A DNA stretch of 64,000 nucleotides from Anolis carolinensis. Taxonomy: Eukaryota. A program made the translations under genes and the position numbers. Every line of letters starts with the position of its first letter. Positions within the stretch are counted from its first letter, which is position 1. This document shows positions 292 to 61,709 of the stretch, piece by piece. Location of the stretch: NCBI RefSeq assembly GCF_035594765.1, contig NC_085841.1, positions 45,677,636 to 45,741,635 of the forward strand. Reading direction: 5' to 3'. The notes below the pieces were generated by a model. It was not told the origin of the DNA. It saw only the letters and a list, made by a program, of their open reading frames with translations, and did not search any database.

Positions 292-1702
292 TGTCAAGAG
301 TCAGACGCCAATTTGAGAGCAAAACAGAGTTTATTCAAGATATAGCCCAAAAAATAGGCACAAACACAAAAGATGGCTTTAAACACTTAACTTTCAGTGT
401 TTAAAGGCAGTCCAAACAAAAATGTATCAAAAAGTATACTTTAGCAACCAAACCGGATTTATCCAAGCAAATAGTTCAGATAAAACAAAAGGTGCTTCAA
501 TTCAGCTCTAAACAAACTAAATTGGCTTGGAAAGGCAGCCAAAACAAAACGAAGACTTGGAAACTTCCCAAAAAACTCCCAAGAGTCACAAGCACAAGGC
601 TCTAAACAGAAACTAAAACCGGGCTTGCAAACAGAGTCAGAGCCAGTGCAAAAGGGAAGGGATGGTTCCAAACCCTTTCTGTTGCAAGCAAGCAGGCTTT
701 GGAGATTTAAAGGGGCAGTGCACAAAAGACGTCATCAAACCGGTCCAGAGTCAAAATAGCAGGAACAGCAGGAAACTGCTTCAGGAGTGCAGGTAATGCC
801 AGAAGCTCAAGGGACAAGGTGAAGAGACGTTGTCAGATTGAGCCAGGGTCAGGGCAGGAGACAGCAGCAGGGTCCAGAAGCAAGCCAGAAGTCAAGAGCC
901 GTGGGTAGACTAATCAGAGGGTGAAGGCAGAAACAGGGTCGAATTCCAGTCCAGGGTCAGAGGCTGTAGTCATCAATCCAAGGTCCACGAATTGGCACAA
1001 AGAGCCAAGACAACGAAGGCAACCGCAGCTAAAAATAGTAATAACAGTGCAGTCCAGGAAAACCCACACAGTTCCAGCCCTCCATTGCAGAGCAACCCAG
1101 GTAAACTTACATCTGAAGCAAAGTCCCAGTCCAGTCTTCTTAACACGTACAGGAATCCCAATGGCGCCCAGCAACACCTTGTCACACGCAAAGTGAAGTG
1201 ACCAAACACTCCCAATTTATCCCAATTCTTCCTGGGTGTCCAAACAAACACCCAAAGAGCAGGTGTCCCAAATCCTTAATCAGAATCAGAACTCCACACA
1301 GCTAAGGCTCGTGGATCGGGCGTGCCTAATTCATCAGAATTCCAATCATTCCTCCCACACCCAACACCATGCACACCTGAGGATCCATCCTCCCTCCTCC
1401 AAGCAGACCAAGTGGGATCTGCTTCTGAAGATACCCAAGGTGCAGCAGTATCCATGGGCCCCAATTCCCCAGGCATCTCCGGTGCCCGTGCCCAGTCAGT
1501 GCCCACTTTCTCAGCCACCACCTGTTCACCAGCATCCATTTCTTCCACAAACCCATCTGAATCTTCCTCAGAAGACTCCCCATTGAGTTCCCTAATTCTC
1601 TTCCTGTACAAATCCTCCAAGGAGCCCTCCTCGCGAGGGTTTTTCCTTCCTCTCCTGATCCCACCACCATCATCCACAGTCCCCGAAGGCGCAGTCACAA
1701 CA
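292..1702 (-). mobile_element. Solo Gypsy-type LTR (LTR-A, 1411 bp)
   Basis: TGT...ACA termini; perfect 5-bp TSD GTCAT at 287-291 and 1703-1707; AATAAA on the minus strand near 330; peptide-level similarity to the LTR at 36194-37378. Confidence 0.9.
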
Positions 1703-1707
1703 GTCAT
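1276..1707 (-). CDS. LTR-A U3-encoded ORF (143 aa), putative pol/integrase C-terminal tail; its ATG comes from the TSD
   Basis: Open from the LTR edge in phase T|GTT; RKRIREL..SSEEDSDGF and DPTWSAWR segments align with the LTR-C peptide. Translation not shown. Confidence 0.5.
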   Translation of the reverse strand: MTVVTAPSGTVDDGGGIRRGRKNPREEGSLEDLYRKRIRELNGESSEEDSDGFVEEMDAGEQVVAEKVGTDWARAPEMPGELGPMDTAAPWVSSEADPTWSAWRREDGSSGVHGVGCGRNDWNSDELGTPDPRALAVWSSDSD

Positions 1708-1838
1708 ATTACCATCAGTTTTGAGTCAGCAGCAATTATTTTCAAATTTCAAGTTTTTCACAAAATCCATTGAACTTATGTGCTAATGAAGCTCCCACAC
1801 ACCTGTACTAGAATGGGTGTTTAGCAATAGTATGTATG

Positions 1839-2605
1839 TGTTGTGACTCAGCCACAGTATAGCCAGAGTCAGGATGAAGAAGGGGATTCTGGGTTTCAGA
1901 TACAGGAGCCAGTTGAGCCAGGAGTTGATGGCATGGAAATGCAGGCTGAATCAGAGGCTGGAGAACTGCAGTTTGAGCAGAATGAACTGTTGACCCCAGA
2001 AACCATAGATAACAGCCAGGCTGACATTCCCATGAGAATGAGTGAGAGAGCTCTCAAGTCCCGGTTAATGAGCGAGAGAGCTCGGTCCCAGTTCAGGTGC
2101 AAGATAACGATAACGAAGACCTTTATTTATCTAGGGCGGACTGTCTGTTTTGGAGAGGTTCTCAGGTCCGAAGGAGTGAGAGGCTGGTGGGAAAGAAAGA
2201 GGCCAGTTCTGGGAAAAGAAATGCCTTTCTTGGGTGCTTTTAAAAGTGTCTGTTTGCAGATAGCTCATTGTCAAAGCAAATCCTCACTTCATCTGTGTGG
2301 ATGTTCTTGTTTCATGCTTAGGAAGAGTTTTCCTGGATCTTTGTACTTTTGGGCCTTGTTTTTGGGATCTACTGACTACTGCCTTGCCTTATGGATTATT
2401 AGCTTTGCTATGGTTTATGGACTAATGGATTTTCATGACTTATGAACTATTTGGAATCTTATTGACTCTTTTATTGCAACTTTGAAAACCCTTTCAACTG
2501 CCTGCTTTGATTTATATATTTGTTTTGCTCAATAAAACTTTAAAAGACTTTCTTCTGTGTCTGACTGGGTGTCTATAGCAAGGTGAACTATTCTGAGGTG
2601 CGACA
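1839..2605 (+). mobile_element. Solo Gypsy-type LTR (LTR-B, 767 bp)
   Basis: TGTTGTGAC...GCGACA termini; 5-bp TSD GTATG at 1834-1838 and 2606-2610; TTTTAAAA TATA-like near 2238; AATAAA at 2531. Confidence 0.9.
1840..2445 (+). CDS. LTR-B U3-encoded ORF (~200 aa), putative integrase tail
   Basis: Open from the LTR edge in phase T|GTT; DEEGDSGF (1873-1896) matches DEEGNLGF of LTR-D. The distal half runs past the TATA-like box and may be chance extension. Confidence 0.4.
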   Translation, partial: VVTQPQYSQSQDEEGDSGFQIQEPVEPGVDGMEMQAESEAGELQFEQNELLTPETIDNSQADIPMRMSERALKSRLMSERARSQFRCKITITKTFIYLGRTVCFGEVLRSEGVRGWWERKRPVLGKEMPFLGAFKSVCLQIAHCQSKSSLHLCGCSCFMLRKSFPGSLYFWALFLGSTDYCLALWIISFAMVYGLMDFHDL

Positions 2606-2802
2606 GTATGATAGCAGTGCTCACATGTGGAACACTGCCTTAAAATGCAACTAGTTATGTTTCCAATATTCCCTTGTGGCTGCATATTAAAGAGAAAGAG
2701 CAGTAGTGGAAACTGACTTGTTTATTTGCCAGGCGTCTTAGATTTTATTAGCATAAGATTGCAGCTCAAAGCAGAACTGTTGCATTTTCTGCAGACTGTC
2801 CA

Positions 2803-2955
2803 AGGCTGAATCTACGTTGTCCTACATCCCAGGATCTGATCCCAGATTATCTGCTTTTTTCCAGATTATTTAACAGTGTAGACTCATGTAATCCAGTTCA
2901 AATCATATAACCTGGAATCAGATCTTGGGATATAGGACAGTGTTAATCTACAGAC
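2803..2955. mobile_element. Short palindromic non-autonomous DNA element (MITE-like)
   Basis: Internal inverted repeats atcccaggatctgat / atcagatcttgggat; degenerate termini; ends approximate. Confidence 0.5.
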
Positions 2956-3112
2956 CAGTTCAGTTTGCTCTGTGTGTGTGTGTGGGGGGGGGGGGGGAGG
3001 GCACTGTTTCTCTTTTGCATCCCAACTGATCAGAGACAAGGGAGAAGCCAGTTGGGAAGGGAGGGAGGGGGGCTTTCTCCTCTTCTCCAGCTGGAGAAGA
3101 AGCAAAAATATG

Positions 3113-5387: not shown

Positions 5388-5888
5388 GGCCAGGCTGTGA
5401 TGCAGCTGGTTGAGTAGCCAGCTGCAATAAATCACTCTGACCAAGAGGTGGTGAGTTCGAGGTCAGCCCGTGTCGGGGTGAGCACCCAACAATTAAAATA
5501 AAAATGCCCCCTGCTCATTGTTGACCTAAGCAACTGAAAGATAGTTGCATCTATCAAGTAGGAATTTAGGTACTGCTCTGCGGGGAGGCAAATTTAACTA
5601 ATTTACGACACCATAAAAAAACTCGTCCAGCTCCTGTTTGGAATGAGGAAGTATCCATCAAGATGCCACAATGGATGATGAAGCAGCTGCTCCCCCTGTG
5701 ACTGGAATCGAGCATAACCTCAGGAAGCTGGAAGCTGGAGAATGTTAAATTGTCTCTCTCTGTCTCTATGTTTATATGGCATTGAATGTTTGCAATTATA
5801 TGTGCACATTGTGATCCGCCCTGAGTCCCCTTCGGGGTGAGAAGGGCGGAATATAAATGCTATAAATAAATAAATAAATAAATAAATA
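5388..5888 (+). mobile_element. tRNA-derived SINE with L2-like 3' end and (TAAA)n tail
   Basis: A-box/B-box-like head (gagttcga); near-identical copies at 21625-22117 (-) and 39960-40429 (+). Confidence 0.85.
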
Positions 5889-6557
5889 CTAGGAATGTTG
5901 TAGTTGCGTGTGATAAAGTATTTACTCAAAGATGCCAAGTGCCCATAATCGAAAGAGCTTTGAAAATGGGACAAATACCAGAAGCAGGTCATAGAAAAGA
6001 CAGTATTTTGCCATCTTTTAACCATGTAGCACATTGATACAAATGGTACTTCTACGGACCATATTGTCATTCATATTTCCATATTACATACTTCTGATTG
6101 TTTGTATTCTCTTCAGGAGAGCCCCTTTATGTTCTAGGGCCATATGTTGTTCTTGGACATTTTTCAAAAGAGAGGAATTAACTCTGTTCAGCTTCATTTC
6201 TGTGACAGTAATTTCCTTCTTAATGAGTCTTAGGTTTGGCTTTAGATCCTAAGTGTGTTTTGTTTTTAATTCTGTACAGCGCCTAGTAATCCTAAATGCT
6301 TCATAATTATTTTAATAATTCATGAGTAATTAACTTTTTTACATGTTCCTTATGTGACAAGGTGTCACTCATGGAAATTACTCAGCGCAGTCTGTAAACC
6401 AATTTTGTTAAATCATTGAAAACCCACCTATTTTTACTCCAACAATGAACAATATATGGGCTAATTGTGTAGCCATTGCAAAATGCTGCAGCAAAGTCAC
6501 TGACTAAAATATAGAAAACATGTTAAAAGTAACCTAGAAAGACTAAAAGCTTGTTTC

Positions 6558-7404: not shown

Positions 7405-7613
7405 CCCCCACTCTTTTAGCCTTCAGGAAAGATTTAAAAACCTGGCTTTTCCGATGTGCTTTCGGAGAGTAACTATTACACACTTCTTTTGTTACTCCCC
7501 CATCATCTACCCTCTAGATTGTTTTTATCTTATGTCCCTGGTCTCCGTGATTATATTCTTATCCTTTTCTCACCCCAAGTTTTAATTAAGTGTCTCATGC
7601 GGCCCGCCCTGTG

Positions 7614-7664
<51 letters not shown>

Positions 7665-7805
7665 TTTGTGTTGCAGTGTATATGATTATTTATTGTATTG
7701 TGATATGTTGTTTTATATTTTGCTATATTGTACTGTTCTGGGCATGGCCCCATGTAAGCCGCCCCGAGTCCCCGTTGGGGAGATGGTGGCGGGGTATAAA
7801 TAAAG

Positions 7806-7854
<49 letters not shown>
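7405..7854 (+). mobile_element. 5'-truncated L2 LINE 3' end with internal (TA)n and (TTA)n tail
   Basis: Near-identical to the reverse complement of 47666-48100. Confidence 0.9.
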
Positions 7855-9160: not shown

Positions 9161-9450
9161 ATCATAGAATTATAGAGTTGGAAGAGACCACAAGCACCAT
9201 CCAGTATAACCCCCTGTCATGCAGGAACGCAGAATCCAAGCATCTCTGACAGATGGCCAACTAGCCTCCAACTAAAAACCTCCAGAAAAGGAGATTCTAC
9301 CACACTCCAAAGTAGCATATTCCACTGCTGAAAAGCTCTTACCATCAGGAAGTTCTTCCTAATATTTAGGTGGAATCTTTGTTACTGCAATTTGAATCTA
9401 TTACTCTATTTCCTAGTCTCCAGATTATCAGAAAACAAGCTTGCCCCCTC
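9161..9450 (-). mobile_element. CR1 LINE 3' fragment (degraded)
   Basis: atcatagaat tail repeat and similarity to the 3' end of the CR1 at 22191-23527. Confidence 0.75.
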
Positions 9451-11154
9451 CTCAACGTGGCATTCTTTCCAGTATTTACATGACTATCATGTGCCCTTTC
9501 ATCTGTCTTTTCTTTTCCACAGAGTCCACTATAAACACTGCACATTGTTGATTTGTGTAAATGAGCAGTGTTCAGAAACCTTTCATTGTTCCCAATTTTT
9601 TGTGATCCCAACATAGAGCTAAAAGGAATCTTATTTGGGGTCAGGACCCACAGTTTAATAAGCAGTGGTCTAGAGCACATTTTCACAAATAAAAAAAAAT
9701 ATTTGGGATATATCTCAACTGAAGAAGATTGGAATGAATTACCTGCTGTCTGAGTTCCATGAGACCCTTTGGTGACAAGTGTACACCTTTGATCTTCCAT
9801 ATCCCCCATGCCTCCCCCATGCCTCCCCCTTCCATTTTGGCTGTGGGAAAAAAGAACTCTTCTTAAAAAGGTGTAAACATCCTTACTCCAGTCTTAACAA
9901 CCTACTCCAGTCTTTCTGAAATTCAACCGCAGAATTGACCATGTATGATGCAATGGCACTTTCACTTGCCGAAAACAATAGCTGTTATAACACATTGGTC
10001 TTCGATATGCCCAATGGAGCTGATTATAGTAAGAGAGTTCCCACACAGCACTTTGCATTGAGGAAAGACTGCAAAAGATTTAAAAAAGTTAACAGAGAAC
10101 AATATATAGTCTAATCTTGTTAATTTTCTCTCTTAATCGTGTGTTGAATAAACTTCCTTCTTTTCATGGCTTGCAAGGAATCCCTTTCAAGGTCCCCCAT
10201 CAGCCACAGAAATCAAGTATTTTTAAAAGGGAGAACAAATGTTCTCCCTTTGTCTTCAGTGTGGGAAGATTTCCATGTCCTCTGTTTGAAATGCAAGGAA
10301 ATGAGAAGTCCTTTCCCTTTCCTTGCATTTCAAATAGGGTGCATGGAAATCTCTCCGGAATAGCCCAATTATGCATGTTGAGTTCATCTGGTAAAGCAAG
10401 TAGGCATCAGGAAATAAGGGCGTGGAGACCTAAAATGCTAGCTGTGTAGAGCTTGAAAGAAAAACTGACTAATTGAAAGAAGACACCCAATGTGTGCCTC
10501 TCATTGGAAAAGTGCTATTTTCCACTTTTTTCCATTGCTAGTCTTGTTAGACAAAAATGGAACTTGCGGGTTTTTCCAGTTTCTTCTCTTAGTCCAAATC
10601 TTGCCAAATCTGATTTGGTTCCAGGTCTGCTAGCAAGGATGTTTATACATGACTGGATACTCAGTCAGAATTTCATGACAAGGATACTGTCCTAGCCACA
10701 AAAACCATAATAGAATGTGTCATCCTGCAGATATCTGTGATTTGTTGCAGAAGAGTTATTTTCTCCTTTTGTCTACCTATATCAAATTAACTCTTGATTG
10801 TGTTAACATTTTAAGATATTTAAGTAAACTGACTCAGTTATCACTGCAAACTGAAGTAATAGAGACTGGCAGGATTACTCTGCCAGCTTCCAACCATCAT
10901 GGGTTCAAATAAAAATGGAATCTGCCATCTTCTGCTGGAAATGTGTTTTTATTGGCTTTTCTTTGTGCAGCCATGAAATAACTAGATCATTTTCTTCTGC
11001 CTTGCCACAAGAATTATATTTTAGGATTTTTCTGAAAGTTTGGAGATGTAAAAATATGAAGATTAGAACCTCTTGTATCAGCAGAAAATGTATAGATTAT
11101 ATTTTAGAAATAGTTTTCCATATCTGCATTGTGTATTCCAGTGGTTTTTATATT

Positions 11155-11917
11155 CAGTGATACCTTGACATACGAGTTTAATTTGTTTTATGACCAAGCT
11201 CATTACTCAAATTGCTTATATGTCAAATCAAATTTCCCCATTGAAATTAATTGAAATGGTGTTAATCCGTTCCAGCTACCCACCCAAAAAAGCCACACCA
11301 ATTTTTATTATGTGTATTCCCCTTCAAGATCAGAGAAGATGCTACTGGAGACCACTCTACCTTGCTCCCCTCCCCCCCATCCCAGCTCTGCTTATGATTG
11401 GTGATCTGGGAGCAGCTCCAAAGGCATGTGCAGCAGAGGTTGCACGGTGGAACTGAGGTGTTGCAGCCACTGCCTGTTGTCTGTTGGTGTCTGGGGTCAG
11501 CCCAGTGGGCTGCATGTGAGCGGAAGGGGTATGTAAGCTTCCCTATCATTCACGGCCTCCTGCATGCGAGGGGGTCACACTCAGGTTTCAGGGTGTGTAA
11601 TTTCCCCTGTCAATCAAGGACTCCTGCCAATAAAATGGGCTCTTCCCAGCCAGTTGGGTTTCTTTGGGGTTTTTCTGCAGGATTTTAAAATTAGAATACG
11701 TGTTCAAGTTGTGGGGAGGACTGTATGCACACATGTTCTGGATGCCTCTTATGCCTTGTCTTTGCAAAAAGGAGGCAGCAGAGGCAACAGTGGCCTTTTA
11801 GGCATCTCTGGAGGGCTTTGTTAAGGGAGCTCGTAACTCAGATCTCAGTTCGCATTTCAAAGCCAAAAATTGATGGAGTGACAACTTGTATCATAGAAAA
11901 CTCATAAATTAGTGCTG
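11155..11917. mobile_element. Degraded Tc1/mariner (Tigger-like) non-autonomous element
   Basis: cagtgataccttgacatacgag-type left end with ctcgtaactca counterpart at right; ends approximate. Confidence 0.4.
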
Positions 11918-13879
11918 AATATTTCAGAAGATGGATTTCAGAATAAAGAGAATAAAAGATTTCCGAACATTTATCTTGCCTTTAGAATACATGCATGTAA
12001 ATATACATGTATAAACAAACTGGTCGCAGAAATAGGGTTAATATCCCTAATATCCATGCAAAACAAGCCATGATCCATTCATTTAAGTGGTCAGAAGATG
12101 CCTCTCTTTTCTTTCCAGCATTCTTCAGGAACATTAGGGTTAACTGGGTGTGTTCAAGCATAGAAGGAAATACCAACTTACAAAATCACAGATATTTTCT
12201 CCCAGAGCATCCAGAGTTACCATTTTATTTTTCCATTAAGAACACTAGTGTGTCCACTCGTTGCTATTGTTAGCAAGAATACCAAAACTGAAATCATGTG
12301 AAAAACTTTATTTTTCATTAATAATCCAATAAACAAAATAATATGTGGTTTTCATCCTTTTATCTGTTTAGAATGATTTTGGAAATGAAAAGATGAAGCA
12401 TGCTTGGAAATAAATGTCTATGTACTAGTTCTTTATTTTAAACAAACTTTATCCTGTATTTCCTCATCAAAAATTACCCAAGAAAGCATACTGGACTGTT
12501 TCTTAGGGTTGGGGATGATTCTGGTGTCTGTTGTCTTTCCCCACTAGTAAATAAAAGAGGGATGTTCTGCTTTTCTATTAAAATGTTTGTAGAAGTAATA
12601 TAAGATTTGCTAGACTGTTCTTTAAAAGAAGAAAAAGCAATGACAAGCAAGACTAAAGTGGGCCCTTGATGTAGGCCCTTGATGTCCCTATGGACACAAA
12701 ATCATTGGATGGTCAAATCCCATTATATACGATGCATAAAAAGACAAAGTCAGTGATCTGTTTGGAGGGAGGCAGGGGCAATATTTTCAAGCTTTGTTTG
12801 GTTGAGTGTTTTGTATAGAATCAGTTGATACAGAGAACCAACTGTATGGGGTTGGCTTGTGCAATTTGGCTGAACTGCTATTTTAACTGTATTTGTTTTT
12901 TAAAAGTTTATTTTTAGATTAACCCAGTTTATTATTCTTGTACCTTGTCGTCCCTATTAACAACATAAAAATCAAAGTGGTCCCTGGTCAAAAAAAAGTT
13001 GGGAACCACTTCTCTATAGTCAGGATGTAACTGAAAAATGGAGGTGCACCCCCCATTTAATAGACCTAGCTTGTGTAAGACACACCATGGCTTTCTTCTA
13101 TTCTGATTGGCCCAACAGGCAGGGCTCACAGAGAAACGCCTTGTGAGAACAAAACATCCTCTCTGTGTGCTGTATGTTCCCGAATAGAAACTGAAAGTAG
13201 CCGTAATTGGCAGCCGTGTGGTCCATTTCAGACAAAAAAATGGCTATGGGATCCTTTCAATTACGGATTTCTGAATAAGCCGAACAAGCCGAAACAGCCA
13301 AAGGCAAACATCTAAAATAAATCCATACACAAGTCTAATATGGGGTTTAAAACATAATTAATTCTGATGAGGGAAGTGAAGGATTTCAGTTATAAGACTA
13401 TCACAGTACTCAAATAGTCTGTTCTGATGGCATGCTACAAGGGTGAAATGATATCTTACCATACAATCCTAAATCTGAAGCAGAAGGAAATGGTTGCCTA
13501 AAACAAAATAAGGAAAAAGAACCACAGAACAGTTGATTCTGCTAACATAACAAAATGTGTGATGAAATGTGTGTGATAAAATAAAATTATACTTTTTTAA
13601 GCTTCCAGTAGGCAATGTATGGTTATCAGTATAAGAGTGTTAAGAAATGTTGTTCAGTTATAAAGTTTTGTTTTTCCAAAAAAAAGTCTTCATGAATCAC
13701 GATTGAAATAACGGGCAACTTGCAGTTATTTCTGTTTAAATGTTTCATATTCTTATTAATCAATAAACCCAGATTCATTTTCACTTAAAGGAAAAATTCA
13801 CCTAATAAACAGCGTTAATCTCTAGAACACAACTTCTAGATTTCAATAATCCTAATTATTCTACTGCTCTTATTGCTAG

Positions 13880-13935
13880 GTTTGCTGAAGCCAAATCACT
13901 CGGAGAAAAAGTAAACGAAATACGAAATAAGATCA
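13880..13935 (+). CDS. KIF6: KIF6 coding exon (FAEAKSLGEKVNEIRNKI)
   Basis: ttgctag| acceptor, |gtaagt donor, phase 2-1, continues the frame of the previous exon. Confidence 0.92.
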
Positions 13936-16900
13936 GTAAGTAACTGTGTTCAACTTTATTTTTCTTCTTTAAAATGCTAGAATTGCAATTATTGCATACT
14001 TTAAAGCTAAAGCAACACTAAAATTGCTGAAATGGATGGTATGAACAAAGCAAAACAAAAAAAAAACCATACTGGAGTGTTATAGGTTTTAGTGAATAAT
14101 AGAATAGATTCCATTTTTCTTGTATAGGCAATAGAACCTACATATTAGGTTAATTCTCTCTGTGTTTATTAAAACATTTAAATAAATTCCGGTCACAAAA
14201 ATACAGTTATTACTGCCTGTGTTTTCCTCAGTGATTCCACATATTTATCTGAAAGATTTTACATGTTAAGCTCAGTTTCATTTATTTCTTTCAATGCTAA
14301 TGCCATACAACCTATTTTTGTAGTCCCCAAATCTAAAGAAATTGGGTTTTTTTTAGTTTCTTCATCTGAACCAAGACAGATGTACTAGGTGGATAGACAA
14401 CAGGAACCAAGAACATGAGTGTGACTAGTTTTTACTACTGCTCAGAGCATCATTCATTATGCCATGCATGGAACCTAACCTGCCAGAATTATAGTTAACA
14501 ACCCAATTGCAAGAATTATAGGCATCTGTGGCTTACAGCTACATACTTAATATACTTTTATTGTTGTTTTGGTTTTATTCAAACATTCCTGGCTGCCCCA
14601 TTGTGCACAATTAAGGCCAGATAACTTCCACATTAGTTTCTGTTTTTCCAGCCAACACTTAATAATACAAAACTCTGCACCACAAAGGTCATTGGAGGAC
14701 TTTTTTGGTAAGCCACTTAATGCAATGGAGAACCCATTTTACCAGTCTTGATGATTTATAGTGATGCTGACAGACATCGATTGGCTGTAGCTTCAATATC
14801 TGCCACATATATTTTATTTTTACAGTTTTTCATAGTAGTGACCATTATTTTGCAGTACTGCAGCTCCTCCCCAAATGATCCATTGCTGCTTCTTCCCGAG
14901 GAAGTAGGCACAGCTTTCAATGCTATCTTCATTGCTGGATGTTTTTCAAACTAAAGTATCCAAATCTTGCAAAATTGAAGTGAAATCCAGTGTGAGAATT
15001 TACTAATGTACCAAAAGATCTTTTTGACCATTTTGGTCTCACAGATCAGACAGCTCTTCTACACAGACCCTAAAATGAGGAAGTTACCAGGATTTTTACC
15101 CTCCCCCCATTGAAAACCCAGATTTGGCGCTGTCTGAAAGCGCCCAGAGAATCCAGTGGTAATGAATAAATGCATCACTACTGATAATACTTTATAGAGC
15201 AGTTACAATTTGCAAATTGCAGTACCCATTTTAGAAAAAAGGAACTTAGATGTGATGATGGTAAAACTAGAGCAGAGAGGCCCTATACTATAAATCTATT
15301 ACTCTATCCACTAGACTTCCTGGCATGAAAGGACATTTTCTCACTTGTAAATCTTAAACTCCTAGTACTAGAGTTACTGGAGCAGAATCTATATAGTCAG
15401 TGATAAAAGAGAGTTACTCTGTATGTACTGTAGAAGGGAAAGTACACTTCGCTCTATGCCTATGGACCGAATTGGTTTTCAGAGAAATATAGATTTCTTA
15501 CAACCTGATGTCTGACTTAGGCTGGATCTACACTTCCATATAATCCAGTTTCTGAGTACAAATGAACTGCATTCAACTGGCTTATAAAAATCGACACTGC
15601 TATATAATTGAGTTTCAGAGTGCAAATTAACTGCAAATTAACTGGGATCAATTGATATTCCAAAACCTCTTAAGAAGCAGCTGTTCCTCTTATTCAGTTC
15701 AAATCTCAGTGAATAATATAATTGACATTGAGGACAAGATGAAGCAGACTTTCATTTCAAGTAGGCCTTCCCAAAGTAATGCATTTTGAAAATACAATAA
15801 CAACACAGGGCTTGGTCACTTTTATTTATTTAAGAATTGTGACTGGTTCATACAGGATACAAAGGCATTGCTAAAAATTGCTATGATACAACTACAAATT
15901 CCATTTCTGATGGTCATCATACATTGTATTAATAGCAACCTTAGAGAAAATAATGCAGTCACCTCACTGTCTAGAAATGTTGTATATTTGTGCATTAAAC
16001 ACAGATTCTGTACTTTATGTTGTATTAGTCAGATATATTTTCGGTTGCTTTGTATAGTGTGAAATCACTAGAGCAGTGAGAGAATAATTCTTGAATCTGT
16101 GTTAAGAGTCTGATACATTCCTCACTTTGCAGTAGTTTCTATACTTAACATTTCAAAACCACCTCTCATATCTCCCGTTATTCTTCATTTTGACTCCCTT
16201 GCTTCAAGAAGGTGCATTTACTTCAATCATCTTTGGTCCATTGCTAGCTTTACTCTCATCCTTCATATATGCATTGAAGAAGAGATTTGGAGTCACAAGA
16301 AAGAAATCATATGGAATAAATCGCAGGTGTTCCCACCTGCTATTAATATCCTGTTTGGAGTTTAGATGCCTCTAGTCTTTTTATTTATTCATTATTTGTA
16401 AATCCACGTGGTATGTGAAGAATTCAGAAGTATTTTTTCCTAAAATCTGTGGTTGGTGATCTTGTCTCTGTAGGATAAGTAAACCCAAATTGAAAGATGA
16501 TGTGAAAGGAAGTGAAATAAAGTCAGGATCATGAATATATGATGAAGCTGTCCTGGTAAATTAGAAGATAAGAGGAAAAAGTGAATGGTCTAGATAGGGC
16601 AAAAGATTTGCATATTACATCAAGGCAATCATAGCTCTATATGGAAATGTTTGTTGGAAAACTTAACAGTGCCATTGGGGAATTTTTAATATATTGGGGC
16701 ATTTGTTACATTCATCCTGAATTATTTGCCTCAAAATGAAGTCCTAGAATATTACAGTGTCTGACATCTTTAATCCAAAGTAGAACAATTTCTTATTTGC
16801 ACCATTAAATTGACTCTTTCTGTATGCTAAATTGCTTTCCCCAAACTCAAGAGTTTCAAGACAGCGTGTATTACAAACCCCACAGTTTAATTTGAGGGTT

Positions 16901-21624: not shown

Positions 21625-22117
21625 TTTATTTATTTATTTATTTATTTAGTCTTTATATTCCACCCTTCTCACCCCGAAGGGGGCTCAGGGCAGATCACAA
21701 TGTGCACATATAATAGCAAACATTCAATGCCATATAAACATCAAGACAGAGACAGAGACGCAGAAGCGATTTAACATTCTCCAGTTTCCAGCTTCCTGAG
21801 GGTATACTCGATTCCGGTCACAGGGGGAGCAGCTGCTTCATCGTCCATTGTGGCATCTTGATGGATACTTCCTCATTCCAAACGGGAGCTGGACTAGTTT
21901 TATGGTGTCGTAAATTAGTTAAATTTGCCTCCCTGCAGAGCAGTACCTAAATTCCTACATGATAGATGCAACTATCTTTCGGTTGCTTAGGTCAACAACG
22001 AGCAGGGGCTATTTTTCATTTTAATTGTCGGGTGCTCACCCTGACACGGGCTTACCTCGAAGTCACGACCTCTTAGTCAGAGTGATTTATTGCAGCTGGC
22101 TACTTAACCAGCTGCTC
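21625..22117 (-). mobile_element. tRNA-derived SINE (same family as 5388-5888)
   Basis: Reverse-complement match over ~490 bp, (TTTA)n at left. Confidence 0.85.
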
Positions 22118-36193: not shown

Positions 36194-37378
36194 TGTTGAG
36201 ACACAGAGGCCTTAAAGAGCCACATACACTATTTAGTCCAACAAAAAGTTTATTGCAAAAAGCTCAGAGAAATTTAACCTCAGTGTCTCTGGCCAAAACT
36301 CAAAGAATTTACCCAAACTGGGCTCCAAAAGGCAAACGGAAAATAATCTGGGTTACACAGAAGGGAAAACCGGATTAAAAAGCAGTCAAAGTAACCAGCA
36401 AACAAGCAGCGCTGTACACAAGAGTTCTAACAGACAGCGCTGCTCCCAAAGAGTTAACTGCAAGAAGGAGTTGCCAAAGACAGCCGTAGTCCAAGAGTCA
36501 TTGCTGAAGAAAGCCAAAGGATACGTCGTTTTCAAGTTGTCAAATAAAGTCGTCGACAAGTCAGTCCACAATCCAGGGAGGGAGAAAGCCACACTCACGA
36601 GAAGTCAGTCCAAGTTGAAGATTCTCAGGTAACACGAACTCCAGGCTGCAGAACCCGAACCCAAAACCCAACACAAGAACAGGCAGCGACAAATACACAC
36701 TATACGTAACCGACACTTTGCCTTCTGCAAAGATTCCCACTGCAGAGACTACTTTTAACTTACACATCATTATCTGATGATGAGCTGGCCTCCACCCCAT
36801 CATCATCTCTTACAGCTGTCCTTGTCTTCACACATGAACCCCTGTTTCCATCCCTCCAGTTCCTCCATCTCTTGTCAAGACTTAGGCTTCCCCATGATTC
36901 TGATGTATCTCCCCTTTGCCAATCCTCATGTACCAAAACCCCCACAAACGTGTCACTAGAGGTTGGGTCTCCACATATATCCCTTATCTCTTGTACCTTA
37001 GTCCAATCCATCGTGTTCTCCCCATCCTAATCACTCCCAGACCCATCATTCCCAGAGAAACCCATAAACGACTCATCATCTGTGGGAGCAGTAAGTATAT
37101 CCCGGATCTTCTTCCTCTCTCGTTCTTCATCTGATTCCTGCTCCCGAGTAACCCTCTTTGTGCCTCTATTCCCATCCACCACATCTCCTTCCTCGCTCAT
37201 TGACTCCCCGCCACTTGAAAACCCTTCGAATGTGTCTTCATCAGTAGGTGCCATAAGTATATCCCGGATCCTTTTCCTTTGCTGTTCTTTTTCTGACACC
37301 TGCTCGCGAGTAGCCCTTTTCCCCCTTCTGGTACTCATATTACTGCTTGCAACATTACTTACTGGCTCTACTACAACA
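36194..37378 (-). mobile_element. Solo Gypsy-type LTR (LTR-C, 1185 bp)
   Basis: TGT...ACA termini; 5-bp TSD GGTGG at 36189-36193 and 37379-37383; minus-strand AATAAA near 36250. Confidence 0.9.
36760..37377 (-). pseudogene. LTR-C U3-encoded frame (~205 codons, one internal TAG at 37027-37029) with three IRDI..PT..[ST]FxG repeats
   Basis: ORFs 37027..37413 and 36760..37011 are in the same frame; 54-aa repeat period; synonymous differences between repeats. Confidence 0.65.
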
Positions 37379-39959: not shown

Positions 39960-40429
39960 GGGGCCGGGCTGTGGCGCAGCTGTTGAGCAGCTGCCTTAAA
40001 TCACTCTGACCAAGAGGTCATGAGTTCGAGGCCAGCCCGTGGCGGGGTGAGCACCCGTCAATTAAAAATAAAAAATAGCCCCTGCTCGTTGCTGACCTAG
40101 CAACCCGAAAGATAGTTGCATCTATCAAGTAGGAGATAAGGTACCACTTATAAAAAGTGGGGAGGCAAGATTAACTAATTTACGACCTGGTATGAGGAAG
40201 TGCCGTCAGTGTGGATGATGAAGCAGCTGCTCCCCCCTGTGGCCAGAATCGAACATCCCCTCAGAAGAAGGTTAACTTGCCTCTGCGTGTCTCTCTCTGT
40301 CTCTGTTTGATGTGTTTATGGGCATTGAATGTTTGCCTTATGTGTGTTATAATGTGATCCGCCCTGAGTCCCCTTCGGGGTGAGAAGGGCGGAATATAAA
40401 TACTGTAAATAAATAAATAAATAAATAAA
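39960..40429 (+). mobile_element. tRNA-derived SINE (family of 5388-5888), CpG-rich young copy
   Basis: tgtggcgcagctg A box, gagttcgaggc B box, (TAAA)n tail. Confidence 0.88.
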
Positions 40430-41071
40430 TGTAGTAACTACCTTAATTTAGCTTCCAACCCCTCTCTGTTGGTTAGGATTCAATTCAGGATTTCTGATTC
40501 CTTTGTTCTTTCCTTTAGAAATTGGAAATTATCTGTAAGGCACACCAGAATTTGTTGAACAGTCTCTGCTTAGCAGAGTTAAGCTTCCATCAGATATCAG
40601 GGTAATTCAGGTCTCCCATATTTCTTGTATCTTGGAGATTTCTGAGATTTGTTTCAAAAAAGCATAATTTTTCACTTCCCATCCCTATATCTATGGGACC
40701 CTGTCCCTCTGGGAAGCTGTTAGAAATATCCATATCACAGCAGTAGAAGTATTTGCAAATTGCTTATTTCTCCCATTTTTGCATTTCCTTTTATACTATT
40801 TCAAACTCCTCCTTTCAATTTATCTTTATTGATCAGAAGTAACTGTTCATTGGTCTTCTACTATCAGCCAATTAGCAACAACTTTAACTGGTCTTTTGTC
40901 CTCATCCAATTAGACAGGACTTTCAATGAACTTTTTTTTGCTCAAGGTCATTTATCTGAATATTCTTTATTTAAAAACTCAACAAATCATCATATAAGTT
41001 CAAGACATATCCAACCATTTTAGACTTTAACTAGATGCAATTATTCTGGTTTTCTGCCATCAAGCGATAGC

Positions 41072-45586: not shown

Positions 45587-46884
45587 TATGAAGGTTGCTC
45601 TGTTATTGACTTTGGTCCTCATTTTTGGCTGTAAGTTATCAGGTACAATAGAGGTTATTATTATTACTTATATGAAAAATAAAAGCCAAGAGCATGAATA
45701 AAATGTGATATTCTGTGCAGAAGAGAGTGTAAGGTTGTAAATTATTTGCATATTTATGATATCATCTTCTGTGCCATTACACTTGTAATGACCCTTTTAA
45801 GCTTCCTGTGATACTTTTTTTTTCCTTTTTGGACTTTTAAGGTACATTGTGCCTTAAGCCTGTTAAATCCATTTTATGCAGCTATGTTCTCAATGTGATG
45901 GGTAAAATATTTGTAATGGAGCTCTTGACATTGTGAGAAGGAACAGTAAAGTTTATATCCCACTGTCCCAAAAAAATATTCTTGTCCCTTGAAGGCTGTT
46001 TGAGGCATTAGCATTTTAAAGTCAAAGTTTCTAGTTTCTTATATGTAAGAATATAAAATAACCAAATCCTTACTTCCCAAGGATTTCATTGAACCTGAAT
46101 GACACAGTAACCTTATTTATTAATTCCTGTAATTGCTTAGGATGAACCCTTTTAAGCTTATATTTTCCTTTGGCTCCATAGCACTGGAGCACAAAAAGCT
46201 CTTTGTTACTAAAGCCACCCAGAACAAACTGGTAATTTATTTAGAAAAAATAATATAACTACCTTCTTCCATCAGTCAACCAACAGAACAGTGAAAGTCG
46301 ACAGGAATTATGAGGTATGTAGCAATAAATGTGAGTCACAATAACAAAATAGCTGTCCTGAGTTCCTTCGGGGAGAGAGGTGCAGGTTAGAAATAACATT
46401 TTATTATTATTTTATTATTGTGAAAATAATAACAAAATAACCAAAATACTATAGCTATTCACTGCATGTTATATTGTTAGTTTGTGTGTGTCTTCAAGTT
46501 GTTTCCAGCTTATGGCATCCTAAAGTGAACGTATCTTGGGTTTTCTTGGCAAGATTGTTTCTCCTTAATCCTTATGTACTTTTCAAGGCATGGGATTTGT
46601 GTGCATGTTGCAAATTAAGGATGTAAGTGTTTATCTGAAGTTTAAGCATTTACAAATCTACATAGTTATTCATATATTAGTACTTCAATATAATAGTAGC
46701 TGGACTGGATGGTGCTAGAAAAGAAGGAAGGCAGTTTCTTCGTGGCCATCCAAGTAGCCTATTTCCCTAGTGCTGACCTTAAAAGGTTTTCAGAGCTAAA
46801 ATGCTCTGGGAAAAGTGACTTGCCACATAACATGCAGGGGCGGCTCATGCACTATGCAAAGTACGCACTTGTGGAAGGCACGAT

Positions 46885-46898
46885 CCGCTAGAGGGCGC
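46885..46898 (+). promoter_or_regulatory. CTCF core-motif match CCGCTAGAGGGCGC
   Basis: Close match to the CTCF consensus; binding not shown. Confidence 0.45.
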
Positions 46899-47039
46899 CA
46901 CCGGCAGGCTACTGGGGCAGGTTTCTCGAAGTCCCGGGCCTTTGCCGGAGGGAAGAATTTCCTTCCTCCAGCAAAGGCCCGGCCAAGGGAAACCCGGGGC
47001 ATGTTATGGGGACACTCTCCCGCCCCAGCAGCCCCAGGC

Positions 47040-47470
47040 CATGGCCCTCCTCTCGTGGCCCCCTCTCTCTCATGCCCCCTCACGTGCGCCCCCCCTCTCT
47101 CACCCCCCCCTCTCTCGCGTGCCCCTTCTCTCTCATGGCCCCTCTCTCACACACCCCTCATGGCCCTCTCTCTCACAGCCCCCTCTCTCTCGCCCCCTCT
47201 CTCTCTCGCCCCTCGCGGCCTCTCTCACGGCCCTCTCACCCCTCTCATGGCCCTTTCTCTCTTGCGGCCCCCTCTCTCTCTCGCAGCCCCCTCTCTCTTG
47301 CATGACCCCTCCCTCTCTCCCCTCTCTCTCTTGCAGCCCTCTCGCCTCTCATGGCCTTCTCTCACAGCTGTCTCGCCCCTCTCGCGGCCCTCTCGCCTGC
47401 ACGGCCCTCTCACCCCTCTCTCTCTCACGGCTCTCTCGCCCCTCACGGCTTCTCTAATGCCTCTCTTGTG
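47040..47470. repeat. CT-rich degenerate tandem repeat (ggcccctctctcac-like units)
   Basis: Seen directly; strongly pyrimidine-biased on +. Confidence 0.85.
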
Positions 47471-47480
47471 GCCGTCGCAG

Positions 47481-47670
47481 CCCTGGACATGACCTGAGGC
47501 CAGGCCCCCGGCCCCTCCATCCCCCTGCGCCCTTCTTGGACTCCACCCGCAATGCCCGGCACGCCCTCCGTGCCTGGAAGGAGCGCTTCAGACGCACACA
47601 GGTCTGGCAGGTCGAGCGGGCCTGCACCCATGCCATGCACCTCCTCGAGTACCCACACAGCCGCAAATAA
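47481..47670 (+). other. GC-rich exon-like segment of unidentified origin
   Basis: Follows a long pyrimidine tract and cgcag| acceptor; open frame with G/C at 41 of 48 third positions (47521-47664); ends at the L2 tail. Confidence 0.45.
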
Positions 47671-47848
47671 TAATAATAATAATAATAATAAAACTTTATT
47701 TATACCCCGCCACCATCTCCCCAACGGGGACTCGGGGCGGCTTACATGGGGCCATGCCCAGAACAGTACAATATAGCAAAATATAAAACAACATATCATA
47801 ATACAATTAAACAATACAATAAATAATCATGTACAATGCAACACAAAA

Positions 47849-47893
<45 letters not shown>

Positions 47894-50800
47894 CAGGGCG
47901 GGCCGCATGAGACACTTAGTTAAAACTTGGGGTGAGAAAAGGATAAGAATACAACCACAGAGAACAGGGACATAAGATAAAAAAACAATCTAGAGGATAG
48001 ATGTTGGGGGAGTAACAAAAGAAGTGTGTAATAGTTACTCTCCGAAAGCACATCGGAAAAGCCAGGTTTTTAAATCTTTCCTGAAGGCTAAAAGAGTGGG
48101 GGCTTGCCTGATTTCGATGGGCAGTGAGTTCCATAAACGGGGGGCCACAGCAGAAAAGGCCCTCTCCCTTGTTCCCACAAGGCGGGTCTGGGATACAGGC
48201 AGTGGCGACAGGAGGGCCTCCCCTGATGATCGAAGAGATCGGGCAGGTTTATGGTAGGAGATACGGTCACGAAGGTAGGTGGGTCCCAAACCGTTTAGGG
48301 CTTTATAAATGATGGTCTGCACCTTGAATTGGGATCGGAAAGTGAACGGCAGCCAGTGGAGCTCCTTAAACAGGGGAGTAGATCTCTCCCTGTAACTCGC
48401 CCCCATTATTAATCTGGCAGCCGAGCGTTGGACCAGTTGTAATTTCCGAGCCGTCTTCAAGGGAAGCCCCATGTAGAGCGCATTACAGTAGTCCAGTCTA
48501 GAGGTAACTAGGGCATGGACCACCGTGGTCAAGTCAGACTTCACGAGGTATGGTCGCAGTTGGCGCACAAGTTTGAGTTGTGTGAAAGCCCTCCCGGCCA
48601 CCGCCGACACCTGACCCTCAAGCATCAACGCTGAATCCAGGAGGACCCCCAAACTGCGGACCTGTGATTTCAGGGGGAGTGCGACCCCGTCCAGCACAGG
48701 TTGCCACCCGATACCCCGATCAGACGAGCGACTGACCAGGAGAGCCTCTGTCTTGTCAGGATTGATCCTCAACTTGTTCCTCCTCATCCAGTCCGCCACA
48801 GCGGCCAGGCACTGGTTCAGCATCCGAGGGGCTTCCTTGGATTCAGATGGAAACGAGTAGTGGATTTGCGTGTCATCCACGTAGAGATGGCAATGCCCTC
48901 CAAAACTCCGGATGACCTCTCCCAGCGGTTTCATGTAGATGTTAAATAGCATGGGGGATAAGATAGACCCTTGCAGGACCCCACAGGTCAATGGCCAGGG
49001 GTCCGAGCAGGTATCCCCCAGCTTCACCATCTGGGAACGGCCCTCCAGGAAGGACTGGAGCCACTGCAGAACCGTGCCACCGAGCCCCATCCCAGAGAGC
49101 TTCCCCAGAAGGATACCATGGTTGATGGTATCGAAAGCCGCTGAGCTTAACCAGCCAAGAAGGACAAGGATCCAGAGTGCAAGTGGTCGCCCTCACAGAC
49201 CCAAGAATCCCCTCCATGTCATCAGGAAGGACAAGCCGGAAAGAATCCCATAAGATCGAACAGACAGGTGCCTCGGTTACCTCCGCTGGAACCACAGTTA
49301 AGCTGGAGTCCAACTCACGACGTATCTGAGCAACTTTGCCTGCAAAATGATGTGCGAAATCGCTGCACCGAGTTGCCAAGTCATCAGGAAGCCCCTGGGT
49401 CTCAGGGGGCCACAGGAGCTCCCCAACAACTCGGAACAACTCCGATGGCCTGTTGGCTGCAGACGCTATGCGGGCAGTCGTGAAAGCTTTCCTGGCTGCT
49501 CGCAGAGCCACGGAGTAAGCCTTAATAGCGGTTTTAGCCCATGCTTGGTCAGACACATCCTGAGATTTCCTCCAGATGCACTCTAGTCGCCTCCTCGCAC
49601 GCTTCATCACAGCCAGCTCCTCAGTGAACCAAGGAGTCGACGTGACTCTACGCAGCGAAAGGGGACGTTCGGGAGCGATCGTGTCAAGTGCCCTTCCCAA
49701 CTCGCTGTTATAACGATCAGCCAGGACATCAACAGGATCGCCAGTCTCCAGAACAGGAAGATCCCCAAGAGACCTCAGAAGTCCATCCGGATCCATCAGC
49801 CTCCTGGGGCGAACCATCTTAATGGGTCCACCACCCCTGCGGAGGTTAGAAGCCACGGCGAAACTTAAACAGATCAGATGATGGTCAGACCATGACAATG
49901 GAAGAATACTTTGCTCTTCCACTCTGACTGTCCCACCGTCCACAATAAAAACCAGGTCCAACGTGTGTCCCGCCTGATGTGTGGGCCCAGATATAACTTG
50001 AGTCAGCCCTATGGTCGTCATGGCAACCATGAAATCCTGAGCTGCACCTGTCAAAGTGGTCTCGGCATGAATGTTAAAGTCCCCCAAAACTATGTGTTGT
50101 TGGGAGACCAGGGCCGAATTGGAGACCACTTCTGCTAGCTCGGACAGAGAGACTGCTGGGTCGCAGGGTGGACGGTACACCAGCAGAATCCCCAAGCTGT
50201 CTCGGGCTCCCACCTTCAGGAAGACACACTCAAACCTCGAAGACTGCGGAACGGCACATCTGATCAGGGCGATGGACTGCCAAAAGATCACCGCGACTCC
50301 TCCTCCCCGCCCCCCAGCCCTGGCCTGCTGATGCACCCCGAAACCTGGTGGACACAGCTGGGTGAGATTCACACCACCCTGCTCGTCCAACCACGTCTCG
50401 GTGATGCATGCCAGATCCGCCCCCTCATCCAGGATCAAATCCTGGATAACAGCTGTTTTACCGTTGACGGATCTGGCGTTCAAAAGCAGGACCTTAAGGC
50501 TGGGAGGTCTGTCCTGAAGACTACCACACCTATTCCTCTCCAGGGTCACAAAAACTCTGTTGCGCTTCTCCCTGGGTCGAAAGTGACCGTTCTTCCTTCT
50601 CCCCCAAACCACCTCAATGAGACCCTGCCCGTGGAAACCCTCTTCCCCCTGGAGAGTTGACTGATTGAGGTTGCCCTTTAAAGGGGATAGTCAGCTGTCC
50701 TGAGATAGGAAATCACCAGCAATACTTGATTGTTTAAAGGAGGAGCCTATCTCCGCTGGTGTAAGAGGAAAGGAGTCATCTAACAGATCATCATCTAGCG

Positions 50801-55823: not shown

Positions 55824-55825
55824 GT

Positions 55826-59469: not shown

Positions 59470-59829
59470 CAGTGGTTCCCAACTTTTTTTGAGTCGCAAC
59501 CCCATTTTATAGAGGTAAAGTAACTTGCAACTCCAGTACATTAAAAACAAGCTTTTTAATAGGGTAAATGAAAATACATCAAAAATAGTTTTTTCGGTAT
59601 AATGTAATTCAAAATACTGTAATGTTAACTGTGCATGAACCTGGATCTCACAGCAAGCTAACCTGACAAACAAAACATCATTACATGTTTATGCATACAA
59701 ATCTCTTTGCAGGACTTGATTACATAATACTTTTTGGTTTTCCCTTTTAAACATTTTCATAGCTCACCACTACTTGGTGACCCCACAGAAAACCCATTTA
59801 GGACGCAACCCATGGGTTAGGAACCATTG
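59470..59829. mobile_element. hAT-type non-autonomous element (360 bp)
   Basis: TIR cagtggttccc / aggaaccattg; 8-bp TSD ATCTAGAG at 59462-59469 and 59830-59837. Confidence 0.85.
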
Positions 59830-60409
59830 ATCTAGAGACTATTTCACCTATTTCCTCCATGGCTAGAGAAAACATCTTAAGTTCTATTAGGGTGTATCAA
59901 CTATACATATTTCCCCCAAAGAAAGCATTTCCATGTAAAGAGATGATGAAAACTGGATATTAAAGAAAGGAAATGAAAGAAAAAAAAAACCAGTTTGGAT
60001 CCTAAAATAAGATATGGAAAAACTTCTCCTTTACAGGATGGGGGAAAGGCTGATGGGAAAGGGAAGAAAATTTGGAGGAGGTAAATAGTGAGTGCAAATG
60101 TGGGAGTTGAGCCACACCTGTTGAGTTTCCTTCTGCATTAATTATGAATTAAAAAGGGAAGGGTACATATTACTAGGTAATTCCAAGTCTTCCTAAAGCT
60201 ACAGTGGATGAATAACAAGAGAGCTGCCTATAGTCCTAAAAATACCTTTGATTGCTTTTGTAGTAGATTTTCTGTTAATTTATTGCTAGTAACTAAAACA
60301 TTTTACAGTGATTAGAATTAGAATAGCTTTATTGTCATTGTGCTATTGCACAACAAAATTAAATGCCTTCCCCAGTACACATCAGTACACATCAGAAAAC
60401 AACACACCC

Positions 60410-60831
60410 ATCCCTGGGCTTAAGGTCCTGCTGATAAACACTAGGTCTGTGAATGGTAAAACAACTGCCATTCAGGATTTAATCCTGGATGAGGGAGCAG
60501 ACCTAGCATGCATCACCGAGACCTGGCTGGATGAGCTGGGGGGGGGGGGGGTAAACCTCACCCAGCTCTGTCCTCCAGGCTTTAGGGTGCATCAGCAAGC
60601 CAGACCCAGGGGGCAGGAAGGTGGTGTTGCGGTGGTCTATTGGGAGTCCATTGCCCTGATCAGGTGCCCTGCTCCTCAATTCTCTGGGTTCGATTGTGTC
60701 CAGCTGAAAGTGGGCAACCAGGACAGTTTGGGGCTTCTGCTTGTGTACCGACCACCCCGCAACACAGCAGTCTCCCTGCCAGAGCTTGCGGGGGTGGTCT
60801 CTGACCTGGCGTTGGGGTCTAACCAGCTAAT
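60410..60831 (+). mobile_element. L2 ORF2 N-terminal (APE) fragment interrupted by Gypsy insertion
   Basis: LKVLLINTRSVNGKT.AIQDLILDEGADLACITETWLDE, homologous to 48942..50612; cut just before GDFN. Confidence 0.9.
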
Positions 60832-61709
60832 TGTGATGTCTCATGGGCCATGTAGTCCCGTTCCTAGTACTATTGTGGCAGACGAAGAGGGAAACTTGGG
60901 TTTCCCACCGGTCCAGCCAGAATCGGAGGCCCCGCACCTGCAAGATGTTTGCCCTCAAGAAGTCAGCCAAACAAGCCTTGAGCAGAATTCTCCCCCGTTC
61001 TCTCGCAAAGATAATTATAATCGAGATAGAGGCGCTAGGGAGGCGAAGCGCCGAAGCGCCAGAATCGCTGCCAGACAATTAGCTGATTAAGCCTGTTTCC
61101 CTTGGGAAATCTTAAGGAGTCATGCATCTGGACACAGTATGGGTTTCACTTCTTGTTCCCCAGGGAAAGTGTTCCTTGGCGGGAAAACAAGATCCTATAT
61201 AGGTGTTTACCCGCAAGGAGATCCTTGCGGAGTCAATTCGTCAGCTTCAGGAGTAAGATCGTGTGTGGACTACGCTACTCCAGTTCCTTGTTTCCAGGAC
61301 CTTGCCACGGACCTTGTTCTAGTTCCAAACCTGCCTTGTTCCTCGGACCTCGCCACGGACCCTGTTCTTGCTTCTTGCCTCTTGTTGCCTCGTATCAAGT
61401 CTTGTTTGCCAAGAATCTAGTTTGTTTTCCAGCCTTGTTGTCAAGCTCCATTGGACTAAAGGACCCTGTCATTTCCCCACACTTGCTCGGCAAGTGTATG
61501 TTTCGGTTATTGGATTATAACTTTGGACTCTAATATCTCATATTGGACATTGATTTCCTGGACTATATTTGACCTTTCCTGAAAGGTCTACTTCTGAACT
61601 ATATTCTTCACTTGTTTTTATTGACTTTATATATTCCTTTAATAAAGATATTAGATAGATTCTGGTCTCTGCGCATGGTTATTGGTGCTCTGCGGCCTGG
61701 GTCTTGACA
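60832..61709 (+). mobile_element. 5' LTR of Gypsy element (LTR-D, 878 bp)
   Basis: TGT...ACA termini, TATATA 61196-61201, AATAAA 61641, followed by PBS and gag. Confidence 0.92.

Follow-up and report, generated by a model that had tools for sequence, protein, structure and literature searches.

The choice of integration site governs the harm that a retroelement does to its host and the safety of retroviral vectors, and the tethers known to direct it are few: the chromodomain, LEDGF for the lentiviruses, BET proteins for the gammaretroviruses, and Pol III or Sir4 contacts for the yeast Ty elements. Both the ET-binding motif of murine leukaemia virus (MLV), which is directed to BET proteins, and the Ty5 targeting domain, which is directed to Sir4, are short C-terminal peptides of integrase that set site preference. 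The C-terminal segment of the Ty1 integrase recruits AC40 (PMC7459421, PMC10050235). In plants, an integrase targeting domain encoded by the long terminal repeat (LTR) itself is on record for CRM group A and for a number of chromoviruses of Beta vulgaris (PMC3059260, PMC3605345). Here we analyse a 64-kb stretch of the Anolis carolinensis genome (contig NC_085841.1, 64,000 nucleotides with no N; the window), which carries four different LTRs of Ty3/Gypsy elements, LTR-A to LTR-D, each beginning with an open coding frame. The evidence leans towards the view that this frame supplies integrase with an LTR-encoded tail that carries host-like chromatin-docking linear motifs.

All four LTRs have TG..CA ends, and the three solo LTRs (A, B and C) are flanked by perfect 5-bp target duplications (Table 1; ATGAC for LTR-A in the orientation of the element), so that the boundaries given in an earlier sequence-only reading of this stretch hold. 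That reading had remarked that the LTRs open in the same phase, and this is confirmed: with the first T as codon position 3, the frame is open from base 2 for 141, 201, 116 and 85 codons in LTR-A, B, C and D respectively, while the remaining two frames of all four meet a stop within 0-10 codons. In shuffled sequences of the same composition, the chance of such an open length was about 5e-4 for A, less than 3e-4 for B, 4e-4 for C and 0.02 for D. The reading was also right that the LTRs differ in sequence, no mutual similarity among the four being detected by blastn, and that all four peptides contain an acidic patch ending in GF and an Arg-rich patch. The tail frame takes up the first 20-40% of each LTR, with the exception of the long open frame of LTR-B. 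Poly(A)-signal-like hexamers lie 40-70 nt before the end of the LTR, and in LTR-D the stop codon of the tail is followed further on by a TATA-like box; the tail frame is thus consistent with a location in U3.

The sequence-only reading had proposed that pol continues across the polypurine tract and enters the 3' LTR in this phase, and two intact elements, both from the public Anolis carolinensis genome, allow this to be seen directly. The first (locus L001) was reached via the gag protein of the window and is a D-family element whose two LTRs are identical to each other over the first 300 nt and are both 91% identical to LTR-D. Its last pol open reading frame (ORF) contains the zinc, core and SH3-like domains of integrase followed by a chromodomain (Chromo, E=4e-8), and crosses the polypurine tract into the 3' LTR as ..GAT AGT | GTG ATG.., with the first T of the LTR as codon position 3, stopping 260 nt into U3. 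About 40 Anolis integrase proteins in UniRef end in the same D-type tail. The second (locus L002, minus strand) was chosen since a gene model there joined a long interspersed nuclear element (LINE) to another LTR. It is a 6.15-kb element with 1055-nt LTRs that are about 99% identical and with the duplication ACTCG on both sides. Its pol ORF of 897 residues, with reverse transcriptase (RT), RNase H and the zinc, core and SH3-like domains of integrase, enters the 3' LTR as ..GAT AGT | GTT ATG.. and continues for 138 codons (tail E'), a tail of the A/C type. The Pfam domains of both elements fit the gene order gag, protease, RT, RNase H, integrase. Read-through from pol into the LTR in the predicted phase is therefore shown for two intact elements, and for families A, B and C we infer the junction from their homologous tails and shared phase. 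Both verified junctions have ..GAT AGT | GTN, and the common phase of the four LTRs is best explained by a shared ancestral junction; four independent inventions of the same phase were considered and rejected, given the identical junction codons and the fact that the tails fall into two homologous groups.

It is worth adding some further observations on these loci. Pfam found no chromodomain in the pol ORF of the E' element, and the alignment of the E' integrase to the D integrase ends exactly at the start of the D chromodomain and resumes at the common ..GDS junction (L002 12652-12760, minus strand). This looks like loss of the chromodomain with retention of the LTR tail. The E' element is itself inserted within an older LTR, LTR-E; together with the D-like LTR at the end of the window (63888-64000), this makes two nestings of like into like in about 100 kb. 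At L001, the intronic Gypsy gag and integrase ORFs (10001-14691) are annotated by NCBI as isoforms X2/X1 of calmodulin-lysine N-methyltransferase, which looks like an artefact of the gene model. On a 4.6-kb metagenome contig (L003; ENA ERZ27260045, k141_42000), a Gypsy pol of squamate type has a chromodomain followed by an FxGF tail; the contig also holds a palindromic repeat resembling a short interspersed nuclear element (SINE) or a miniature inverted-repeat transposable element (MITE), and is probably host DNA in the sample. It has a single LTR with two candidate junctions, both of which would put the T at codon position 2, and it was left out of the argument on the phase.

The junctions also bear on the possibility that the U3 frame encodes an accessory protein distinct from integrase, comparable to sag of mouse mammary tumour virus or lentiviral nef and translated from a start codon of its own or from a spliced message. 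Retroviral ORFs overlapping U3 are well established, and Met is indeed the second codon of the D and E tails; however, A, B and C begin with Val-Val and have no early Met. Moreover, in both intact elements pol passes into the frame without meeting a stop, the phase of the frame relative to the junction of polypurine tract and LTR is constant in all copies, and the U3 of the 5' LTR is not transcribed. We consider a separate protein to be very improbable.

The U3 frame is under purifying selection that is specific to the frame. The E and E' tails align over 138 codons with no indels at 19% nucleotide divergence, and their 40 synonymous and 39 non-synonymous changes give a ratio of non-synonymous to synonymous rates (dN/dS) of 0.20 (p=1e-10). 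In the two shifted frames this alignment gives ratios of 0.95 and 1.7. For LTR-D of the window against the L001 tail the ratio is 0.33 (p=0.02), with 0.27 in the gag comparison, and for the two repeat units within the LTR-C tail it is 0.24. The dN/dS check suggested in the sequence-only reading thus gave 0.20-0.33, in the pol frame only and not near 1, and in the two intact elements pol neither stopped short of the LTR nor entered it in another phase. Across the tails, short motifs are conserved and the linkers between them vary. In the D subfamilies the tails measure 114-126 residues from the end of the chromodomain and the linkers differ by indels, yet the tails retain the DEEENLGF patch and still end in RRS.RIAA.

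These results make it hardly credible that the open frames are neutral, functionless read-through whose likeness to host motifs comes from a low-complexity acidic and basic composition. It is true that the composition of the tails is biased, that the E-values of the motif matches described below are not individually significant, and that in some Anolis families the tails are short only (P0169). Nevertheless, open frames of this length are improbable by chance, the E and E' comparison shows strong constraint in the pol frame alone and without a single indel, and the motifs are invariant across subfamilies in spite of their variable linkers. Like the accessory protein, this alternative is poorly supported.

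The four LTRs are distinct, but their tails belong to two homologous types only: type 1, comprising A, C, E and E', and type 2, comprising B and D. Within type 1, the E' tail is 76% identical to that of the neighbouring older LTR-E, which in turn is 38% identical to the C tail. Homology within type 2 is weak: B and D have in common an acidic-GF patch close to their beginning (36% identity over 39 residues), and also the C-terminal block once the other frame of B is taken. Four Podarcis integrase proteins have FxGF tails homologous to C, and these integrases are closer to that of D (54%) than to that of E' (45%), which means that the type of tail does not track the similarity of the integrase. 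Modular exchange of tails would be compatible with this mismatch, which does not in itself show exchange. As a separate observation, the Podarcis muralis proteins P0074 and P0127-P0129 have two FxGF units directly after the chromodomain, and a purine-rich stretch is found only further downstream. Their motifs may lie upstream of the LTR, and lineages may thus differ in where the motif sits with respect to the LTR boundary.

Type 1 tails contain 1-3 units, each made up of a basic helix, then an acidic Ser/Thr linker of 8 residues and an FxGF sequence, the linker having this length in C, E and E'. In the AlphaFold2 prediction the E' tail is disordered (mean pLDDT 56) apart from one helix, residues 24-36 (pLDDT 75-80), and the acidic linker follows this helix directly, with FEGF at residues 45-48. 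This is the arrangement of the TND-interacting motif (TIM), defined as a short amphipathic helix within a disordered region, an acidic linker (8-16 residues, many of them Asp/Glu or Ser/Thr), and FxGF, the last described as essential in all known LEDGF/HRP2 partners (PMC9987994). FxGF is present in C (twice), E, E', the Podarcis proteins and L003. A profile of 12 type 1 segments was compared with 177,635 distinct PDB sequences and matched only two chains, 6emo_A and 5yi9_A; a narrower profile matched the same two (11-12 segments per profile). Both are fusions of the LEDGF/p75 integrase-binding domain (IBD) with JPO2, and the matches lie in the JPO2 motifs M1 and M2. It should be said that the E-values are weak (0.19-3.1), as expected for a short motif, and that the weight of the argument lies in the identity of the chains and not in the scores. 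In 221,000 translated positions of lizard DNA the pattern F.GF occurs 41 times, and at least three acidic residues lie just upstream in five of these, all of which lie in these tails. We infer that the architecture of type 1 is of the TIM, or LEDGF IBD-binding, kind, closest to JPO2. Three more modules are conserved in type 1 tails: a basic patch, RRGxK..RE, lies upstream, and the others are a block with W..WRDG and a C-terminus of acidic Ser/Asp character.

Type 2 tails contain the acidic-GF patch and, in the D-type, the C-terminal sequence RRS[A/L]RIAA[K/R], of which RR..R is invariant. The nucleosome-binding core of HMGN is RRSARLSA, and cryo-EM places its RRSAR in the nucleosome acidic patch, where R23 and R26 make the main contacts (PMC12487698). 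In the type 2 alignment, the invariant columns are the arginines equivalent to the acidic-patch contacts of HMGN2, and the likeness spans about 9 residues at the extreme C-terminus. In the translated loci, R[RK]S.R[LIVM] was found only in D-type LTRs and in LTR-B, where the sequence is RRSERL, with Glu in place of the Ala of HMGN. Since PDB searches with profiles of the type 2 C-terminus recovered no HMGN chain and Pfam HMG14_17 does not match them, the tails are not members of the HMGN family, and the likeness is at the level of the motif. The idea in the sequence-only reading that the tails mimic host chromatin-binding proteins thus stands as far as the sequences go, for a JPO2-like motif in type 1 and an HMGN-like RRSAR core in type 2.

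We propose the following mechanism. In lizard Ty3/Gypsy elements of chromovirus descent, the start of U3 (the first 85-140 codons) would serve as the last, exon-like stretch of pol. The genomic RNA carries U3 at its 3' end, beyond the polypurine tract, so translation of pol would continue into U3 and produce an integrase with an LTR-encoded, mostly disordered C-terminal tail. The short linear motifs of the tail would then tether the integration complex to chromatin by mimicking host proteins. Type 1 would dock integrase on LEDGF/p75 or HRP2, and hence on transcription units marked by H3K36me3; in type 2, following the chromodomain, the arginines of RRSAR[I/L] would anchor into the nucleosome acidic patch. 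The specific assignment, in which lizard Gypsy elements carry in the U3-encoded end of integrase a JPO2-like motif binding LEDGF/HRP2 and an HMGN-like acidic-patch anchor, and so reach the lentiviral tethering factor by mimicry of a linear motif, is a tentative one, which we hold with somewhat less than even confidence. The pattern suggests that the LTR may contribute to the choice of insertion site by the element.

Selection and read-through would also fit if the tail were a selected extension of pol with some other role, such as nuclear import, solubility or multimerisation of integrase, stability regulated by CK2, or a peptide released by the protease, the function itself being only a prediction. 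The tails do hold basic clusters (RRGRK, RRSAR) and many Ser-Asp/Glu sites, type 1 has the W..WRDG and acidic C-terminal modules besides its FxGF units, and the tails have no Pfam match and the HMGN-like profiles no PDB match. Against such a role, the only PDB matches of the type 1 profile are JPO2 motifs bound to LEDGF, the geometry of helix, linker and FxGF matches the TIM definition, the conserved positions of type 2 are the acidic-patch contacts of HMGN2, and other elements carry targeting modules at the C-terminus of integrase. A different role for the tail is on this evidence rather unlikely, though it deserves to be kept in mind.

Several points count against a tethering tail. The junction was seen only in L001 and L002, families A, B and C being represented by solo LTRs. 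In the window itself, copy B is frame-broken and copy C has an early stop. Only one pair of copies or repeat units stands behind each of the dN/dS values. The first Phe of FxGF is absent from A, B and D, and the type 1 scores against the PDB are, as noted, low. PDB searches with two profiles of the type 2 C-terminus gave no match and no HMGN chain, and Pfam found nothing meaningful in any of eight tails, HMG14_17 included. Finally, the protease of the element could remove the tail from integrase.

Table 1. Positions of the LTRs, tail frames and element genes. Coordinates are those of the window unless L002 is named.
Feature	Position	Strand	Remarks
LTR-A, solo LTR, 1411 nt	292..1702	-	TG..CA ends; 5-bp target duplication at 287-291 and 1703-1707
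LTR-A tail frame, 141 codons, type 1	1279..1701	-	39% identical over 110 residues to the LTR-E tail (L002)
LTR-A basic helix, acidic linker and GF segment	1537..1638	-	TIM-like; first Phe of FxGF missing
LTR-B, solo LTR, 767 nt	1839..2605	+	TG..CA ends; 5-bp target duplication GTATG
LTR-B opening frame, 201 codons	1840..2442	+	acidic-GF patch at 1873-1896
LTR-B segment in a frame other than the opening frame	2103..2207	+	RRSERL at 2169-2186; aligns with the C-terminus of D-type tails
LTR-C, solo LTR, 1185 nt	36194..37378	-	TG..CA ends; 5-bp target duplication CCACC
LTR-C tail frame, 116 codons	37030..37377	-	in-frame stop 37027-37029
LTR-C TIM-like unit 1	37207..37308	-	helix, 8-residue acidic linker, FEGF
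LTR-C TIM-like unit 2	37045..37146	-	helix, acidic linker, FMGF; tandem duplicate of unit 1
LTR-C frame continued beyond the stop, 88 codons	36763..37026	-	W..WRDG and acidic Ser/Asp modules in common with A and E
LTR-D, 5' LTR of chromovirus-type element, 878 nt	60832..61709	+	TG..CA ends
LTR-D tail frame, 85 codons, type 2	60833..61087	+	stop 61088-61090; acidic-GF 60881-60904; RRSARIAAR 61049-61075
gag of D element	61753..62739	+	94% identical to an Anolis carolinensis protein
Protease and RT frame of D element	62760..63890	+	interrupted by a nested insertion, then by the window end
Second D-like LTR, 3' end	63888..64000	-	inverted, inside the RT gene; 90% identical to the end of LTR-D
Additional type 1 modules, window	1279-1701; 36763-37026	-
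Additional type 1 modules, L002	10526-10939	+
Additional type 1 modules, L002	12238-12651	-

The copies in the window differ in their state of preservation. LTR-D and LTR-A appear intact across the tail. In LTR-B the two motifs lie in different frames, so this copy is frame-broken between them; it looks tail-like only over about the first 70-90 codons, the remainder being probably a chance open frame. Beyond the stop of LTR-C there is a degenerate third TIM-like unit (36925-37026, minus strand), and the relatives P0004 and P0005 stay open past the position of this stop and through the third unit. An exhaustive search of representative sequences with the LTR-C peptide gave three matches, all of them LTR frames that gene prediction had fused to LINE or other sequence, and no integrase fusion was found among these three. 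A search for longer proteins with a C-family tail, using region 1-160 of P0004 as the query, returned only the query itself.

LTR-D is followed by a primer-binding site, gag and protease-RT of the same element, with Pfam domains for gag, protease and RT. The element is inserted in the endonuclease ORF of a LINE (Exo_endo_phos, 60308-60831), and the frame of the LINE runs into that of LTR-D; the 260-residue ORF at 60308-61090 was accordingly rejected as a gene, being a chance fusion of the two. LTR-A and LTR-B (292-2605), one of each tail type, belong to different families and were inserted independently; they lie in opposite orientation only 136 bp apart with separate target duplications, which could be a hint of a common preferred site, or could be chance.

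The window also contains other repeats. A G+C-rich LINE lies at 46800-50700 on the minus strand, with an endonuclease ORF (48942-50612) and an RT ORF (48035-49090), adjoined by Pro/Ser/Leu-rich low-complexity frames on both strands (46815-47492). An ORF of 404 residues at 22219-23433 has an RVT_1 domain (E=2e-27) and is probably another LINE; its end has a 71% inverted match to 9210-9477. SINE-like repeats with (AAAT)n tails are found at 5400-5890, 7405-7833, 21650-22115, 39990-40430 and 47666-48102, and the members of one inverted pair match at 94-99% over about 400 nt, which would make them unusually young for two copies that lie 40 kb from each other.

In searches of a literature whose coverage was incomplete, no paper was found that links motifs of the LEDGF or HMGN type to the integrase tails of Gypsy elements or chromoviruses. 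The sequence-only reading knew of no description of LTR-encoded targeting tails; plant CRM group A already provides an LTR-encoded targeting domain (PMC3059260, PMC3605345), and the new part would be the host-type motifs in such a tail. CRM group A elements are likewise Ty3/Gypsy elements of the chromovirus lineage, and their polyprotein ORF crosses the polypurine tract and extends into the 3' LTR. In CRM, however, the LTR-encoded part replaces the chromodomain and has no known partner, whereas the lizard elements have a disordered tail of short linear motifs, placed after the chromodomain (D) or in an integrase without one (E'), and their host is a vertebrate. If the proposal is correct, they would be the counterpart to plant CRM in an animal, the LTR supplying the coding sequence for the targeting end of integrase, and with the motif inside the LTR, recombination between LTRs could re-assign promoter and insertion preference together.

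Among cellular proteins, JPO2/CDCA7L, PogZ, MLL1 and IWS1 resemble type 1 in their disordered arrangement of a helix and FxGF joined by an acidic Ser/Thr linker. JPO2 is held on chromatin by LEDGF, whose partner PogZ is derived from a transposase (PMC3185499). The lizard motif differs from those of the cellular partners in being a candidate only, and in lying on the integrase of an active retroelement, encoded by U3. The lentiviral integrases would be its functional parallel, in that both would dock on the same host reader of transcribed chromatin; HIV-1 integrase, however, binds LEDGF through the folded dimer interface of its catalytic core and not through a linear motif of the host type (PMC10854676). 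The lizard elements would then be vertebrate retrotransposons that use the cellular type of LEDGF-binding motif.

For type 2, the closest comparison is with HMGN and Dsup (RRSARLSA): the D-type tail has the RRSAR core, followed by a hydrophobic residue and then by small residues, and both anchor arginines of HMGN2 are invariant. The chromatin-binding sequences of LANA and of foamy-virus Gag are comparable to the HMGN-type motif. Motifs of this kind were expected to be widespread by the authors of the structural work on HMGN and Dsup (PMC12487698), and the D-type tails would, if our proposal holds, provide a case from a retroelement. Both types share with MLV, Ty5 and Ty1 the same basic design, a short C-terminal peptide of integrase that contacts, or in the lizard elements would contact, a host chromatin or transcription factor.

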